Source: Guillardia theta CCMP2712 (lineage: Eukaryota > Protista > Cryptophyta). From it: 64,000 bases of DNA. The stretch spans positions 1 through 64,000 of the forward strand of contig NW_005434587.1 in assembly GCF_000315625.1 (NCBI RefSeq). Direction: 5' to 3'. Shown here one piece after another: positions 984 through 37,830 of this stretch (positions are counted from its first letter, which is position 1; each line of letters begins with the position of its first letter). The notes below the pieces were generated by a model. It did not search any database and had not been told where the DNA came from. It saw only the letters and a list, made by a program, of their open reading frames with translations. Both the position numbers and the translations under genes were made by a program.

Positions 984-2419
984 TCTTACAGTAGTACAAA
1001 ATCGACGCAGGGTGGCAGAGGATTCTTCAAGGTGGATTCATTGATTATGTCTTGTGTTTGAGATGGTATCCGCTTTGATATTGAGTTATAAAAGCTCTAC
1101 CTTTCTGTTTCCAATAGCTGCAGCTCATTTTTCCTTGGAAACATGAAGGAAGGTTGCGCTATCAACAGGTTTTGGTTTTGTTTCTTTCTACGGCGTATAT
1201 GAACTGAACAATGAGCAAGAATACCTGAGAACTATGCAAAATATCTTATTGCTTTGTAAGAATGATGCCCGGATGCGATGCACAGAGTGGCACAGTATCA
1301 TATCAATCAAGTACATGTTTAGGAGATGGTGTAGCTTATTGATGATAATCATCTTTGAGACCGTTTGATCTGAAATAAAGTCTATTCACGGTCACTGTGG
1401 CGGCCTTGGCGTACGGTACCGTAGCGGCTCAACGGTTCCGNNNNNNNNNNNNNNNNNNNNNNNNNNNNNNNNNNNNNNNNNNNNNNNNNNNNNNNNNNNN
1501 NNNNNNNNNNNNNNNNNNNNNNNNNNNNNNNNNNNNNNNNCGGAACGGGAGACAGCGTGGGGTCAGTGCCGAGCGCCAGTCGCACAGTCACCGGTTGCCA
1601 TCGTGTCTGAACNNNNNNNNNNNNNNNNNNNNNNNNNNNNNNNNNNNNNNNNNNNNNNNNNNNNNNNNNNNNNNNNNNNNNNNNNNNNNNNNNNNNNNNN
1701 NNNNNNNNNNNNNNNNNNNNNNNNNNNNNNNNNNNNNNNNNNNNNNNATGCAATCAGGCTTCTGGAACTTCGGAACCGAGCTGCAGCATGGTGATCGGCC
1801 CTGGGGTAGCCGCTGGAAGGGCTTTGGCTGATTCATCGTAGGTTTCCTTCATTTGATTTTCTTTCGAGCTAGTTCCTAATCACCGTTTCAGACTCTGTGA
1901 CGAGTCAATCATGCGTTGTTACGAGGCATGGAGGGATAGGTCACGATTCTTGCAGACCTCAGGATGAAGCAGCCTACTAGGAGGCTGATGAAGGGAGAGA
2001 ACGTTTTGAGATCTCCCGGCAGCGACATCACGTCCAAGCATCGACTTTGCTCAATCTTCAGCCAAAGGGGGATTACTTCGTATGGCATGCGAGCAACCAC
2101 AGATGAAGAGACGAGTGCTGGACAAATAGACAAATGACACGAGGTACAAGTGCACCTGCTTACTGTGTCATCAACTTGCTCCATTCAAGTGGCCGTGGAC
2201 TCGTCAGTGGGATGCAGGTTCAGAGATCACAAGTATCATTTGCACATCTTTTTATGAAGCCATACTAAGTCCGTGCTACATCAGGTGTGGAGTGAAGCAC
2301 TAGTATAGAAAAGCAAAAGCAAAAGAAGCATCTACATATTCATTGAGTTCCTTGCAGTCAAATGTCATCCTATGGTATGCTATGCGATGCAACCGTTGCA
2401 TTGCACCGTGATTGCAAGT

Positions 2420-3116
2420 TTAGCCCTTCTTGTTGCCGACGTCCACATACTTCTTCAGGTACAAGTTCTTTTTGAAAACCTCGTACATGGCATCTGCAAC
2501 ATCCACGTCTATGGACTTGTAATNNNNNNNNNNNNNNNNNNNNNNNNNNNNNNNNNNNNNNNNNNNNNNNNNNNNNNNNNNNNNNNNNNNNNNNNNNNNN
2601 NNNNNNNNNNNNNNNNNNNNNNNTGAACTCGAACGGGCGGAGGATCGTGAAGTCCACAGTGCCCCTGTATTCTTTTCGAAGCCACGTCTCAAACACCTCG
2701 ATGTCTGCATAGATGTTGTTGAGGATGCATGGCTTCACAAACCTTCGGAAAAACCAACCGGCGTTGGGGTGGTCGTGGCAAGAGGTGATTGCGATCAGCC
2801 TCTTGACCCCTTTTCTCTCCATCGCCTCTATAATGCGCGCGTACCCCTGTGAGAATATGACCGTCTTCTCTTTGATCCCGTCGGATCCTGTACATCCAAA
2901 CACCACGTCCTGCCCGACCAGCGCGTCCTCATAGGTCTTGGGGTCCAAAGCATCTGCCTTGATCCACTTGATCTTCGGTTGCTTCTTCATAGCAGCTTCA
3001 GGGTTGCGGGTCACGCCGGTGACCTGGTGTCCTGCTTCAAGGCACTTGTTGACGACCAGCTGGCCGATTCTTCCCGTTGCTCCAAAGACCAAAACATGCT
3101 GATTGCTGCTCGCCAT
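2420..3116 (-). CDS. NAD(P)H-binding Rossmann protein, flavin reductase/BLVRB-like (copy 1, spans an N gap)
   Basis: MASSNQHVLVFGATGRIG (GxxGxxG), GQDVVF, GVKRLI, DFTILRP. Identical to 3932..4591 where sequenced. Confidence 0.85.
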
Positions 3117-3931
3117 GGGCAAGTTGCACTGTGTGTTAGGTGCTGCCCTCCGAGGCTTTTTATGCGTGAGGTGCTGTCTACGACACCGGTGGTATTTCCA
3201 TTCAAATCGGCTATAAGGTGCGGTGGGGTACTTCGAACTCTTGGGGGGATGACTGCTGGCTTTACCAGCGGGGCCCTGAAAGATAGCTTTACTACTGAGT
3301 TGACGCCAAGGCTCTCGCCCCCTCTCATCCCCGTGCATCCCCTCCTGTCCCACTGCAGACATTGCTGCAGCTATTGACATTTGCTGCAGATTGCTGCAGA
3401 CATTGCAGCTGCAGCAATGTCTGTTGCATTGAGTAGTAAACCAATACTTTTACAGTAGGCTACAATGCCACTGATGCTGTGACTGTTCTATGGTACAAAA
3501 AATAACCCCCCTCCCCACCCCCCCGTCTTATATATAGAAGAAGTAAAGAGTAGTAAGCGAAATCGAATTTTCCTGGTACTAATTTTACAACACAGGGGAT
3601 TTCTATCAAAAGTCAATAATAAACAATAATAAACAAAATCTTTTGCAGAAACATACCAGCAGGGTCCTGAAGTGGGACAGGAGGGGGTGCAGGAGTGGGA
3701 CAGGAGGGGGTGCACGGGGATGAGAGGGGGCGAGAGCCTTGGCGTCAACTCAGTAGTAAAGCTATCTTTCAGGGCCCCGCTGGTAAAGCCAGCAGTCATC
3801 CCCCCAAGAGTTCGAAGTACCCCACCGCACCTTATAGCCGATTTGAATGGAAATACCACCGGTGTCGTAGACAGCACCTCACGCATAAAAAGCCTCGGAG
3901 GGCAGCACCTAACACACAGTGCAACTTGCCC

Positions 3932-34392: not shown

Positions 34393-35075
34393 GCTTCCAC
34401 AGATTGCTTAAATTGATAGGGTGGGTACAATTTTCTACCGGTACTTTCCTGATATAATTTGATTTCTAGGTACCAGGTACTTGAAGCATTAAGGGGGTGG
34501 AGTACCCCATGGGAGGGGAATTGAGAATTGAGAGTCCGTGACCTGGTCCGTGCTTGCTGAGCACTTTTTGGTATTTTATATTGTACGGCGTTGAGGACGT
34601 TCATAGCAGATTTTAGGATATGGGTCATCCTGCAGTACTTCTTCCATGTAAAAACTAATATTCTTTTGTAAAATGCAGTACCACAAGTTCAAAATGTGTT
34701 TTATACGGGGCCATCCAGATGCAGGGGTAGCAGTAAAACCCCAGGTGAGGGGTGGGGTTGTTTGACGGTCACCAGTAGGGGTGCGGGTTGCCTTATCCTT
34801 TAATCGACAAAAGGACTCCCGAAGGAGTCCTGGACCAGCATGACAGGGGTCATTGATAGGTTTCAATCACCCATCCAATGGGGCTGTATGAGGGTCTTAA
34901 AAAAGAAAAAAAAAAAAACTTCCCGCCTCCGACGGAAAGTTTGTGGCACTGCTCGTTTCATCTTCCCGCCATTACAGAGTTTGCGGTCCGACAATACACT
35001 GAAACGATGGTAATGAAAAAAATGTAGCGACTACCTGCTATCTAACATGGTTTCGCCAGACTAACATACTATAAC

Positions 35076-37137
35076 ATGCCGAGGAAGAGAAAACGAATTA
35101 CAGATGATTCAGACAACGGTCAAGAAATAAGTTATTCAAAACCATTCACGAGAGTCGTCAAATGTGGGTTATACTCGAGACTCAAGGTAGAGAACAGATC
35201 GATTTTAGACGTGATCGACAGATGGGTATTACATATCAGTCAGATCACATCAAGAGGCAGTATGATATTCAACTGTTTTCTGATATGGGGCAGGGATACA
35301 GGGAATTTACGATATGTAGTAGATGAAATCAAGAGAGCCAAATCGACCTTTTTCTGGAATGTTTTTACACTTGGAATGGAACAACATAGCCGTACAGATA
35401 ACAAGTATCCAACTCTACAACGTTTCTGGTCAGAGAAAAGACATCTTTTCGTTGATTTATGTAGAATTCGAGGAGACTCGCAAGCTATTGTATTCGCTGC
35501 AAATCAATATGGAACGAATTTCTACCAAGACCTGAAAGCAAATTTTACAAACCGATTGGAAAAGTTCATTGCCGAATTCTGCAAAGGAGAGTTACATATT
35601 AACCATCAGCAAGAAATCGAAGACGTGAAGAATGTATTGTTTCAAAGGAAAGATTACGAGTTGACGACAGAAGTGTTTAACAGGAATAATTCACAGCAGA
35701 TAGGAACCTTCATCGACCATATGAAACAACTAATTGGATTATCGGGGGACGAAGATCTTTTTAGTTTCAAATATGACAAATTTGATCATAGGTTGCAGAA
35801 AAATCTGTTTGAGATAATCGAGACACACATGTTCATGTTGAAGTTCTTCGAAGATCGTGGTCTCTCGAAAAAAACATTCAAGGCAGCACCAATGTCGAAA
35901 TTCGGCAGAAAACATCTAACAATCGATAATGATGTGATGTATTACATTTTGAAAGAAGCGAACAGTTTGAAACCGGGAGAAGATAAAAAATCGTTCATGA
36001 GAATAGATCAAACTTTGGAGAACTCTAAGAATTTCAGAAGGATTTTCGACTGTTCGAATCTGTTCAGAGATCAGAGAGAGGAGATTACAAGTATCACGAC
36101 AGACGGTGTATCGGTTTGTTTTCGCTTCACGTTAACTGTCAAAACAATCGATGGACTCGAACAGGAACCTTCATTGCGCACTACCAAATGGCTTGCCGAT
36201 AGAAAAAGGGCTGAACGGAAATCGGCGAAGAAGATATCAATATCATACAAAGTATTACATGAAAATTCAGAATACCAAAGAGAGATCGAAGAATGTAAAA
36301 ATTGCCCAAGGGTAATTGCGATCGACCCTGGGAGGAGCGTCATTATATCGGCCGTCGAACAATTCAGAGATGATCAACAAATAATCAGAAAAAGATTTCA
36401 GTTTTCGAGAAAACAATATTATCACGAGTCACATCTGAATCGCAATAAAAAGAAAAGAAAGACGTGGGATCAAGATATTCAATCGACATTGCACTATCTC
36501 AAGGGGTTCTCGAGTAAGTCTGGCGGCAGTCTATCAAGATTCGAAGACTATCTTCTTGCAGTTACAAGTCATTGGGAGGAGTTAACTTCGCATTATTCAA
36601 AGCGAAAATACGCCAGGATGAAATTCGACATCTACATTTCGAAACGAAAGTCAGTCGACAGGTTTATCCGTACAATGAAAGGAAAGGGAGAAATAGAACC
36701 TGTTATCGCATATGGAAATGCAAGGTTCCCGTCTACAGGACGTCGAGGAGAAAGGCCTGTACCGGTCAGGTGGATAAGAAGAAGATTCGAGAATCACTAC
36801 AGAGTCGTAGATGTTGACGAATACCGTACTACCAAGTGCTGTAACGATTGTGGTTCTGAGCTCGATGTGCTTCGACGGATTGAAAATACAGGGAAAGAAC
36901 CAGACGAGACCTGTAGGTTGAAAACAAGGAAAAGTGAAGTACGAGGATTGAAATTTTGCAGATCATCGAGGTAATGTCAAGTTTTGTATACTCCTGTAAT
37001 TCACCTTTTCATCTAACTGTTATCGTGACAGCTGTAAAGGAAAGCCGATCAAATCCAGGGACTTGAATGCTGCACTGAATATACTCACTTGTTTCAATGT
37101 GTTTCCTGAAAGACCGAATCACCTACGTCGCCCCTGA
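35076..37137 (+). CDS. Fanzor (Fanzor1-like) TnpB-family RNA-guided endonuclease; exons 35076-36970 and 37032-37137, 666 aa
   Basis: RuvC-I VIAIDPG (D417), TDGVSV, IAYGNA, VDEYRTT (E582, shifted catalytic Glu), zinc finger CNDC...CRSSSC, and RuvC-III SRDLNAALNI (D642) in exon 2. N-terminal PRKRKR. Confidence 0.93.
36971..37031 (+). other. 61-nt GT-AG spliceosomal intron in the Fanzor gene
   Basis: AG|GTAATG donor, CTAAC branch-like motif at ~37013-37017, GACAG| acceptor. Splicing restores the frame into CKGKPIKSRDLNAALNI. Confidence 0.88.
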
Positions 37138-37139
37138 GG

Positions 37140-37545
37140 TGAATTCAATGATTGTTGTCGCCCCCTCCCTACCCAGACTGCGTCCCTCGGGACTCGATGC
37201 CTAATTCCCTGCCTGCCTGCCTGCCTGCCCGGTGCCTGCCTCCATTATGATCCGATGTTTACGACATGTGATCATTGAAGTGACTGACTGGCATCATTTG
37301 GTAGGATTCATGTAAGGCTCCAACAACATCCGAAGACAATTTGGCAAAAAAAAAAAACTGCCGTTGTATGACGGAGAGTCGCGGCTCTCAATCATACGAC
37401 GGCAGTTCTGTGCGAAAACTTAGTTCGTCGTTCAGAAGGGTATTCACATATTCCGTCACATCATGTCACATCATGAGGGAGAGTACCCGTGGTAGATAGA
37501 TTCGTGGCGTTTATCTATTATTGTCTTCCCTAATCGCTGATTGTC
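37140..37545 (+). ncRNA. Candidate omegaRNA (scaffold plus 3' guide) of the Fanzor
   Basis: Lies immediately 3' of the ORF and has many complementary segments, including a 16-bp stem 37356-37371/37392-37407 with one G-U pair. Exact ends unknown. Confidence 0.7.
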
Positions 37546-37624
37546 CTCGTACTGATTTTTAACTTAACTTTGAGTAAAGAAAGGATCAGTATCTCCCTGC
37601 CTTGACGTATGGGTGTGTAGTCAT

Positions 37625-37830
37625 TGAGCCTCTCGGGTCCGACGGTCAATTCCCGTAGTAGCCACCGGGCGCCGCGCGGCGGTCGGACGCCGGGCGGGGC
37701 CCCGCCGCGCGGCGGCCGGGCCGACTCCCGGTCACCGGGCCGCGGGTTCCATACTCCGAGGCAGGCTACAGTACGGTAGTACTGACGACCGATACGGTCG
37801 GACTCAAGCGCGGCCCGGCCGGCGCGAAAC
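37625..37830. repeat. GC-rich palindromic dispersed repeat
   Basis: Same motif set (ccgggcc, cggtcac, gactc, acggta). Confidence 0.65.

Follow-up and report, generated by a model that had tools for sequence, protein, structure and literature searches.

To our knowledge, Fanzors are the only RNA-guided DNA nucleases known from eukaryotes; few of them have been characterised, and neither what they do nor how they are connected with transposases is settled. Here we analyse a Fanzor1 gene, and the transposon that carries it, in the cryptophyte Guillardia theta CCMP2712. The gene lies in the first 64,000 nucleotides (nt) of contig NW_005434587.1 (assembly GCF_000315625.1, forward strand; scaffold C87), hereafter the window, and genome searches were made over the assembly of 87.1 Mb in 669 contigs. 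Coordinates given without a scaffold refer to the window, and features lie on its plus strand unless stated otherwise. A preliminary description of positions 35076–37545 had proposed a complete eukaryotic OMEGA system (the name is from "obligate mobile element-guided activity"), consisting of a Fanzor nuclease and a downstream candidate omegaRNA. We consider it probable that 34797–37517 is an intact, non-autonomous TTAA/TTAT transposon with a Fanzor1 gene, moved in trans by a piggyBac transposase and possessing a right-end omegaRNA and a role in homing.

Four kinds of described system provide the background for this locus. GtFz1 (PDB 9CER–9CET), from the same genome, has a measured target-adjacent motif (TAM) of TTAAN and a guide that starts directly after the terminal TAAG of its scaffold. 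Saito et al. (2023) place it, as FZID83, on GUITHscaffold_7 (NW_005434667, 896451–896603), and their supplementary G. theta Fanzor loci are on scaffolds 7 and 348 only. SpuFz1 of Spizellomyces punctatus (PDB 8GKH, 9CEU–9CEZ) belongs to a multi-copy element whose 3' terminal repeat encodes the omegaRNA. For TnpB of the IS200/IS605 elements (ISDra2), a role in restoring the element at the emptied site has been shown, and the same role has been proposed for Fanzors. Finally, Fanzor-carrying piggyBac elements are listed in Repbase, with a 5' duplication that forms part of the TAM (2026 review, PMC13565253); because that review already describes it, the association of piggyBac with Fanzor is not in itself new.

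On its predicted fold and family alignment, the 666-amino-acid (aa) protein encoded in the window is a Fanzor1. An AlphaFold2 model was made for exon 1 (631 aa; predicted local distance difference test score 84.8, predicted template-modelling (TM) score 0.85), the support for RuvC-III coming from alignment. The first seven Foldseek matches of this model were all Fanzor1 structures (E 1e-19 to 2e-15, ~610–740 aligned columns), headed by SpuFz 9CEU (E 9.5e-20, TM score 0.63–0.66) and followed by PpFz and then GtFz 9CER (E 3.1e-16), with Cas12f, Cas12h and Cas-phi ranking behind them at E values of at least 2e-4. In a phmmer search of the PDB the sole match was SpuFz 8GKH (E 9e-7), in which DEYRTT of the query is aligned to DEYKTS. 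A Pfam scan returned a weak match to PF07282 (TNB) that fell below the cut-off (E 0.033) and is uninformative alone. Since a word-indexed protein search gave just two non-self matches, an exhaustive HMMER search was needed; at E<=1e-3 it recovered 1,389 relatives, of which the top-ranked one apart from the protein itself is 35% identical and comes from the cryptophyte Hanusia phi. We found no named public protein of similar length that clusters with the 666-aa protein.

The catalytic residues could be located as D417 (IAIDPG), E582 (VDEYRTT) and D642 (SRDLNAALNIL), together with a zinc finger of the form CxxC...CxxxxC (C589-x2-C592 and C628-x4-C633). All of them lie at the positions that had been read from the DNA in the preliminary description, and its Fanzor call, now checked by structure prediction and profile, agrees with both the Foldseek ranking and the family alignment. 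D417, G547, P563 and E582 are invariant across the 67-sequence family alignment and, with exon 2 added to that alignment, R641 is found in 65 of 67 sequences and an aspartate occupies the D642 column in 64. The RuvC triad reads as a canonical D-E-D, whose glutamate sits in the loop that immediately precedes the zinc finger. There is good reason to expect that the protein would function as an RNA-guided nuclease. The nearest relatives outside the cryptophytes (33–35% identity) lie on two densely packed contigs, one of 18 kb (ERZ27297441, L061) and one of 7.8 kb (SRR28423930, L062). Among their neighbours are a dsRNA-binding (double-stranded RNA) protein, a faint histone match and a YqaJ exonuclease, and by this gene content the contigs look like giant-virus DNA. 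Both relatives are single copies whose ends are not definable, and their 3' regions show no obvious likeness.

The gene has the features of a eukaryotic gene, including a spliceosomal intron that is removed in a transcript contig. Its long open reading frame (35076–36974, 632 aa) ends in AG|GTAATG; splicing from AG|GT at 36970/36971 to AG|C at 37031/37032 yields the 666-aa protein, which ends in RRP* (stop codon 37135–37137). Exon 1 (35076–36970) encodes residues 1–631 and two bases of codon 632, and takes in the WED/REC (wedge and recognition) region, RuvC-I D417, E582, the first three zinc ligands and, at residues 2–7, the motif PRKRKR, which we read as a putative nuclear localisation signal. 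The 61-nt GT..AG intron (36971–37031) divides the zinc ligand pair C628/C633, and exon 2 (37032–37137) supplies the last ligand, C633, and RuvC-III with R641-D642. The spliced form that the preliminary description had put forward is confirmed by a contig of RNA-sequencing run X1, which begins at 35076 and omits exactly these 61 nt (joint 36968->37030, with GT..AG ends). Each of the 12 genomic copies that were aligned retains the intron, the genome contains no intron-less DNA copy of the gene, and 66 homologues are collinear across the junction; a paralogue from a second family, family B, has uninterrupted sequence at this position. The Fanzor1 gene is therefore transcribed and spliced as predicted. 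The gene is also richer in AT than its neighbours, as had been remarked, with a GC content of 0.36–0.40 as against 0.44–0.68 in the flanks.

The preliminary description had left undecided whether this protein is GtFz1 itself or a paralogue. The GtFz1 gene lies elsewhere, at C7:894431–896503 (L022:1932–4004), and encodes 690 aa without an intron and with N658. The native 30-nt GtFz1 guide, as given among the oligonucleotides of Xu et al. (2024), has a single match in the genome, at C7:896590, in agreement with the published FZID83 coordinates. BLASTP aligned the 666-aa protein to GtFz1 over 51 aa at 35% identity and nothing more, and a profile of the clade of the 666-aa protein does not detect the GtFz1 locus. 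The shared organism and TTAA-type flanks spoke for identity; it is refuted by the separate scaffold, the different length, the absence of an intron, N658 and the restriction of BLASTP similarity to 51 aa. By these comparisons the 666-aa protein is a distant paralogue of GtFz1 and an uncharacterised member of the family. The two have in common their genome, their fold (Foldseek E 3e-16), a TTAA-type TAM or flank and a 3'-end guide RNA with a paired 3' terminus next to the guide (predicted here). They differ in that GtFz1 has a D-E-N triad in 690 intron-less residues, whereas the protein described here has D642, 666 aa and an intron; in the distance from stop codon to right end (86 nt in GtFz1, 380 nt here); and in that no inverted repeats or transposase link have been reported for GtFz1, whereas the present gene is multi-copy with defined ends.

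The gene is carried by a young multi-copy transposon, of which it is the only gene. The element spans 34797–37517 (2,721 bp), and its boundaries were set by the points at which copies become alike and cease to be so; the preliminary description had run on to 37545, and its RNA region to 37560, both of which lie beyond the right end. On the left, a TTAT at 34793–34796 is followed by the left end (34797–34830), which consists of the terminal repeat CCTTTAATCGACAAA and a hairpin, GGACTCC-CGAA-GGAGTCC (34813–34830). On the right, a degenerate terminal repeat (37503–37517) with the core GCGTTTA, whose four outermost bases read TCTA instead of AAGG, is followed by a second TTAT (37518–37521). Between the left end and the gene, the 5' non-coding region (34797–35075), a presumed promoter and 5' untranslated region (UTR), is found in 11 copies at 92–100% identity. 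In the genome as a whole there are 11 left and 16 right ends, and copies are 98–99% alike. In four copies (C87, C111, C23 and C29) the spliced coding sequence is intact, with 4–11 nt of difference between them in 1,998, while the other eight of the 12 aligned are broken by frameshifts or deletions. The ratio of nonsynonymous to synonymous substitution rates (dN/dS) among the intact copies is 0.3–0.8 on only 4–11 differences, so that constraint is not clear. An equal tetranucleotide stands on both sides of 9 of the 11 copies that retain both ends (TTAA in six, TTAT in three) and, because the TTAT pairs are spread over different subfamilies, we regard these tetranucleotides as target-site duplications. 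The left TTAT is also the presumptive TAM, given the matching tetranucleotides of other copies and the TTAAN of GtFz1.

Several further observations concern the copies and their surroundings. Two copies, L004 (C29) and L007 (C30), have a common right flank and different left flanks, and L007 is without the left TTAA, which points to recombination among copies or to an insertion within a different repeat. A lone right-end remnant of 30 nt (L056, G000:C36:78962–78991) is followed by A (TTAA), and a diverged left-end remnant (L057, G000:C63:372705–372955; 74% over 258 nt) has no Fanzor or transposase nearby. Just outside the element, at 37537–37580, lies a dispersed repeat of ~44 nt whose 35-nt core is present 736 times genome-wide, mostly as exact matches and on either strand. 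In transcript contigs this repeat reaches a summed depth of 2,000–3,200 with differing sequence on either side, and it often lies within ~10–13 nt of a contig end.

The ends of the element point to piggyBac. Transposase genes with the PF13843 domain are present at 10 or more loci in the genome, and a piggyBac-like element of ~2.9 kb on scaffold C8 carries CCTTTAA[A/T]CGACAAA at each end and is bounded by an ATAA (= TTAT) duplication. The TTAT and first 15 nt of our left end are identical at 19 of 19 positions to the end of the C8 element that lies 5' of its transposase gene, and in both cases the terminal repeat is followed by a similar GGACTCC...GGAGTCC hairpin. At the right ends of the present family (family A) and of family B, the repeat cores TAAACGCC and TAAACGAC, respectively, stand at the same offset as the C8 repeat, so that the right end and the piggyBac-like repeat have the core TAAACG[A/C]C in common. 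The reading that suits these sequence comparisons best is that of a non-autonomous, piggyBac-type transposon whose right end has been remodelled, and mobilisation by piggyBac is a well-motivated proposal. The element resembles the non-autonomous, Fanzor-carrying piggyBac elements of the review (PMC13565253) in its TTAA-type 4-bp duplication, its Fanzor cargo and the sharing of one terminal repeat with a PF13843-encoding element; it is unlike them in its changed outer four right-end bases and in its use of TTAT besides TTAA.

The Fanzor1 gene is covered at low depth by contigs of three RNA-sequencing runs and by raw reads of a fourth, and these reveal splicing beyond the coding intron. A second GT..AG intron (37139–37304, 166 nt) begins just after the stop codon; its joint was seen in runs X1 and X2, and it is kept unspliced in a run X3 contig (37099–37465). 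Within it lies a (CCTG)n microsatellite at 37200–37241, which is expanded in a diverged copy, L044, that retains the splice sites. On the minus strand we identified four introns, visible as CT..AC joints at 36211–36275, 36327–36564, 36632–36699 and 37032–37088 and found in up to three runs each. The 68-nt joint at 36632–36699 was seen in three runs and, as a loose end, in seven raw reads; a deletion variant was considered as its cause and rejected, as the genome contains no such DNA. Because there are GT..AG joints on both the plus and the minus strand, both strands are transcribed and spliced. The spliced antisense across the Fanzor gene could reflect regulation or silencing of the element.

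A plausible omegaRNA lies in 37350–37521. The candidate scaffold (37350–37517) is predicted to form hairpins at 37357–37406, 37407–37436, 37438–37488 and 37489–37521. The dense base pairing noticed in the preliminary description is borne out by comparison with shuffled sequences, every one of which was beaten by 37138–37520 (z -4.1), 37305–37520 (z -4.5) and 37350–37521 (z -7.1); the validated GtFz1 scaffold folds with z -6.2 and is base-paired at its 3' terminus right up to the guide. In L044 there are two changes in the last ~50 nt, of which one turns a U.G into a C-G pair in the terminal stem, as against heavy divergence over the ~60 nt upstream. The sequence of the terminal ~19 nt agrees with the family B right end at 15 of 19 positions, at only 48% identity of the proteins. 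Beyond these ~19 nt, alignment of the family A and B 3' regions gave only a weak internal stretch and no cross-family RNA model, and Rfam had no match in 34700–37700. By analogy with GtFz1, read-through into the flank would make 37522–37541 the guide of the window copy, its last 5 nt overlapping the dispersed repeat described above. Positions 37522–37560 differ in every copy. Since 37139–37304 is spliced out and sequence past 37521 is copy-specific, the omegaRNA span first proposed (37140–37560) extended too far at either end, its initial 166 nt being intron and its last ~25–40 nt flank, or would-be guide. Of the complete OMEGA system, then, the Fanzor1 gene is upheld, and the omegaRNA is a prediction made with no RNA seen to run through the right end, no Rfam match and almost no covariation. 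On analogy with GtFz1, TTAA/TTAT is a well-motivated candidate for the TAM.

Taken together, these features suggest a cycle in which a piggyBac-like transposase, supplied in trans, would mobilise the element. The Fanzor would bind, as its omegaRNA, a transcript that continues across the final, structured ~170 nt (37350–37521) into the flank. Seamless excision would leave TTAA/TTAT, serving as the TAM, followed by flank that matches the guide; the Fanzor ribonucleoprotein (RNP) could then cut the emptied site, and repair from a filled copy would restore the element. Several observations weigh against this account. At the right end, the four outermost bases are TAGA in family A and TAGC in family B, as against CCTT in the C8 repeat; this end is no true inverted copy of the left, and its recognition by a piggyBac-type transposase is assumed. 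Neither reads nor contigs cross the right end into a flank, the depth over 37427–37527 being 0–2.9, in runs that included no small-RNA library and in contigs that break at repeat edges. Spliced antisense is at least as visible as sense, the strand convention of the raw-read library not being known. Covariation is almost absent from the family A 3' region, the copies being almost identical, and conservation of the right end is equally expected of a transposase-binding end. A 10-nt tandem duplication, two units of GTCACATCAT at 37455–37474, lies inside hairpin 3 of the window copy and is otherwise found only in the C13 copy, most copies having one unit. The assembly contains no empty site for the window copy. 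Finally GtFz1, the only tested relative from the G. theta genome, gave no editing in human cells.

Some of these points would fit an element in which Fanzor1 is intact and the OMEGA function has been lost, with no omegaRNA made or bound, whether through antisense silencing or with the right end acting only as a transposition signal, so that the 3' region is a UTR plus transposon end. The lack of any transcript seen through the right end, the four antisense joints in up to three runs each, the broken state of 8 of the 12 aligned copies and a dN/dS of 0.3–0.8 would all accord with that reading; we nevertheless think it unlikely, as four copies, >99.4% identical, retain a frame of 2 kb with every catalytic residue, sense splicing is observed, the last ~50 nt of L044 are far better conserved than its other 3' sequence, and every Fanzor1 tested to date binds RNA from this same position.

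It is distinctly improbable that the omegaRNA is instead a long, two-domain RNA from an unspliced 3' region (37140–37560), even though the whole of 37138–37520 folds (z -4.1) and the X3 contig (37099–37465) is unspliced: in two runs 37139–37304 is spliced out as a GT..AG intron, the interior of this intron is a variable microsatellite, expanded in L044, family B has only 161 nt between stop codon and right end, and 37522–37560 is different in every copy. We give very little credence to movement unrelated to piggyBac, for instance by IS200/IS605-style single-strand transposition through subterminal hairpins, with the right TTAA as part of the element. The derivation of Fanzors from the TnpB of such elements, the lack of true terminal inverted repeats and the hairpins near both ends (34813–34830 and 37489–37521) would be in keeping with such movement, but the element encodes no Y1 transposase, TTAT flanks both sides of three copies from different subfamilies and TTAA both sides of others, and the left end matches the piggyBac-like repeat at 19 of 19 positions while the right end has the repeat core at the same offset. 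We accordingly favour the non-autonomous, piggyBac-type transposon with Fanzor1 and a right-end omegaRNA. Within it, we raise more tentatively, and with some doubt, a natural partnership of piggyBac and Fanzor, in which the right repeat (AAGG -> TCTA) would be at once transposase substrate and 3' stem of the guide RNA, the TAM would be the TTAA/TTAT target, and seamless excision would make the site of the RNP.

The genome contains two further families of the same clade, B and C, at 48% and 34% identity, respectively, and with the same C-terminal motifs. Unlike the window gene, both lack an intron before RuvC-III and have shorter 3' regions (161 nt and ~34 nt). Family B (L023–L031, for example C26:574400–577225, gene C26:575141–577063) has ~10 copies of an intron-less, 644-aa Fanzor, with tandem repeats of ~90 bp upstream of the gene; the stop codon and the right end are 161 nt apart, and the right end has the core GTCGTTTA-NCTA in common with family A. 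We did not find the left end of family B within the DNA examined around it. In family C (C72:356513–358402; C201), copies are alike for only ~34 nt after the stop. Among the systems described elsewhere, SpuFz1 is the best structural match, over its full length, and also has a canonical D-E-D with its glutamate in a DEY[KR]T motif immediately ahead of the zinc finger; it differs in its 17% identity, a TAM of CATA rather than one like TTAA, and a different type of transposon. TnpB (ISDra2) has in common the RuvC and zinc-finger core, a right-end guide RNA (predicted here) and the proposed homing at an emptied donor site. In contrast to TnpB, the gene here is eukaryotic, with introns, a basic N-terminal motif and a much larger REC/WED, its transposase partner would be of the DDE and not the Y1 type, and Foldseek matches to Cas12f/TnpB-like chains are weak (E values of at least 2e-4).

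With this element a known system gains a new example, and knowledge of the system itself is left unchanged. What it offers is an enzyme of compact size (666 aa) with a canonical D-E-D triad, where GtFz1 has an unusual D-E-N and no recognised transposon context, together with naturally intact copies, defined element ends, a plausible TTAA/TTAT TAM and, in the same genome, a transposase that is a candidate partner. The family is thus a reasonable candidate for biochemistry and for the question of whether Fanzors act in restorative homing for DDE transposons, and the four intact copies and culturable host make the partnership of piggyBac and Fanzor directly testable. If that partnership is real, it would be a eukaryotic, DDE-transposon version of the restorative homing of TnpB, possibly held in check by spliced antisense.

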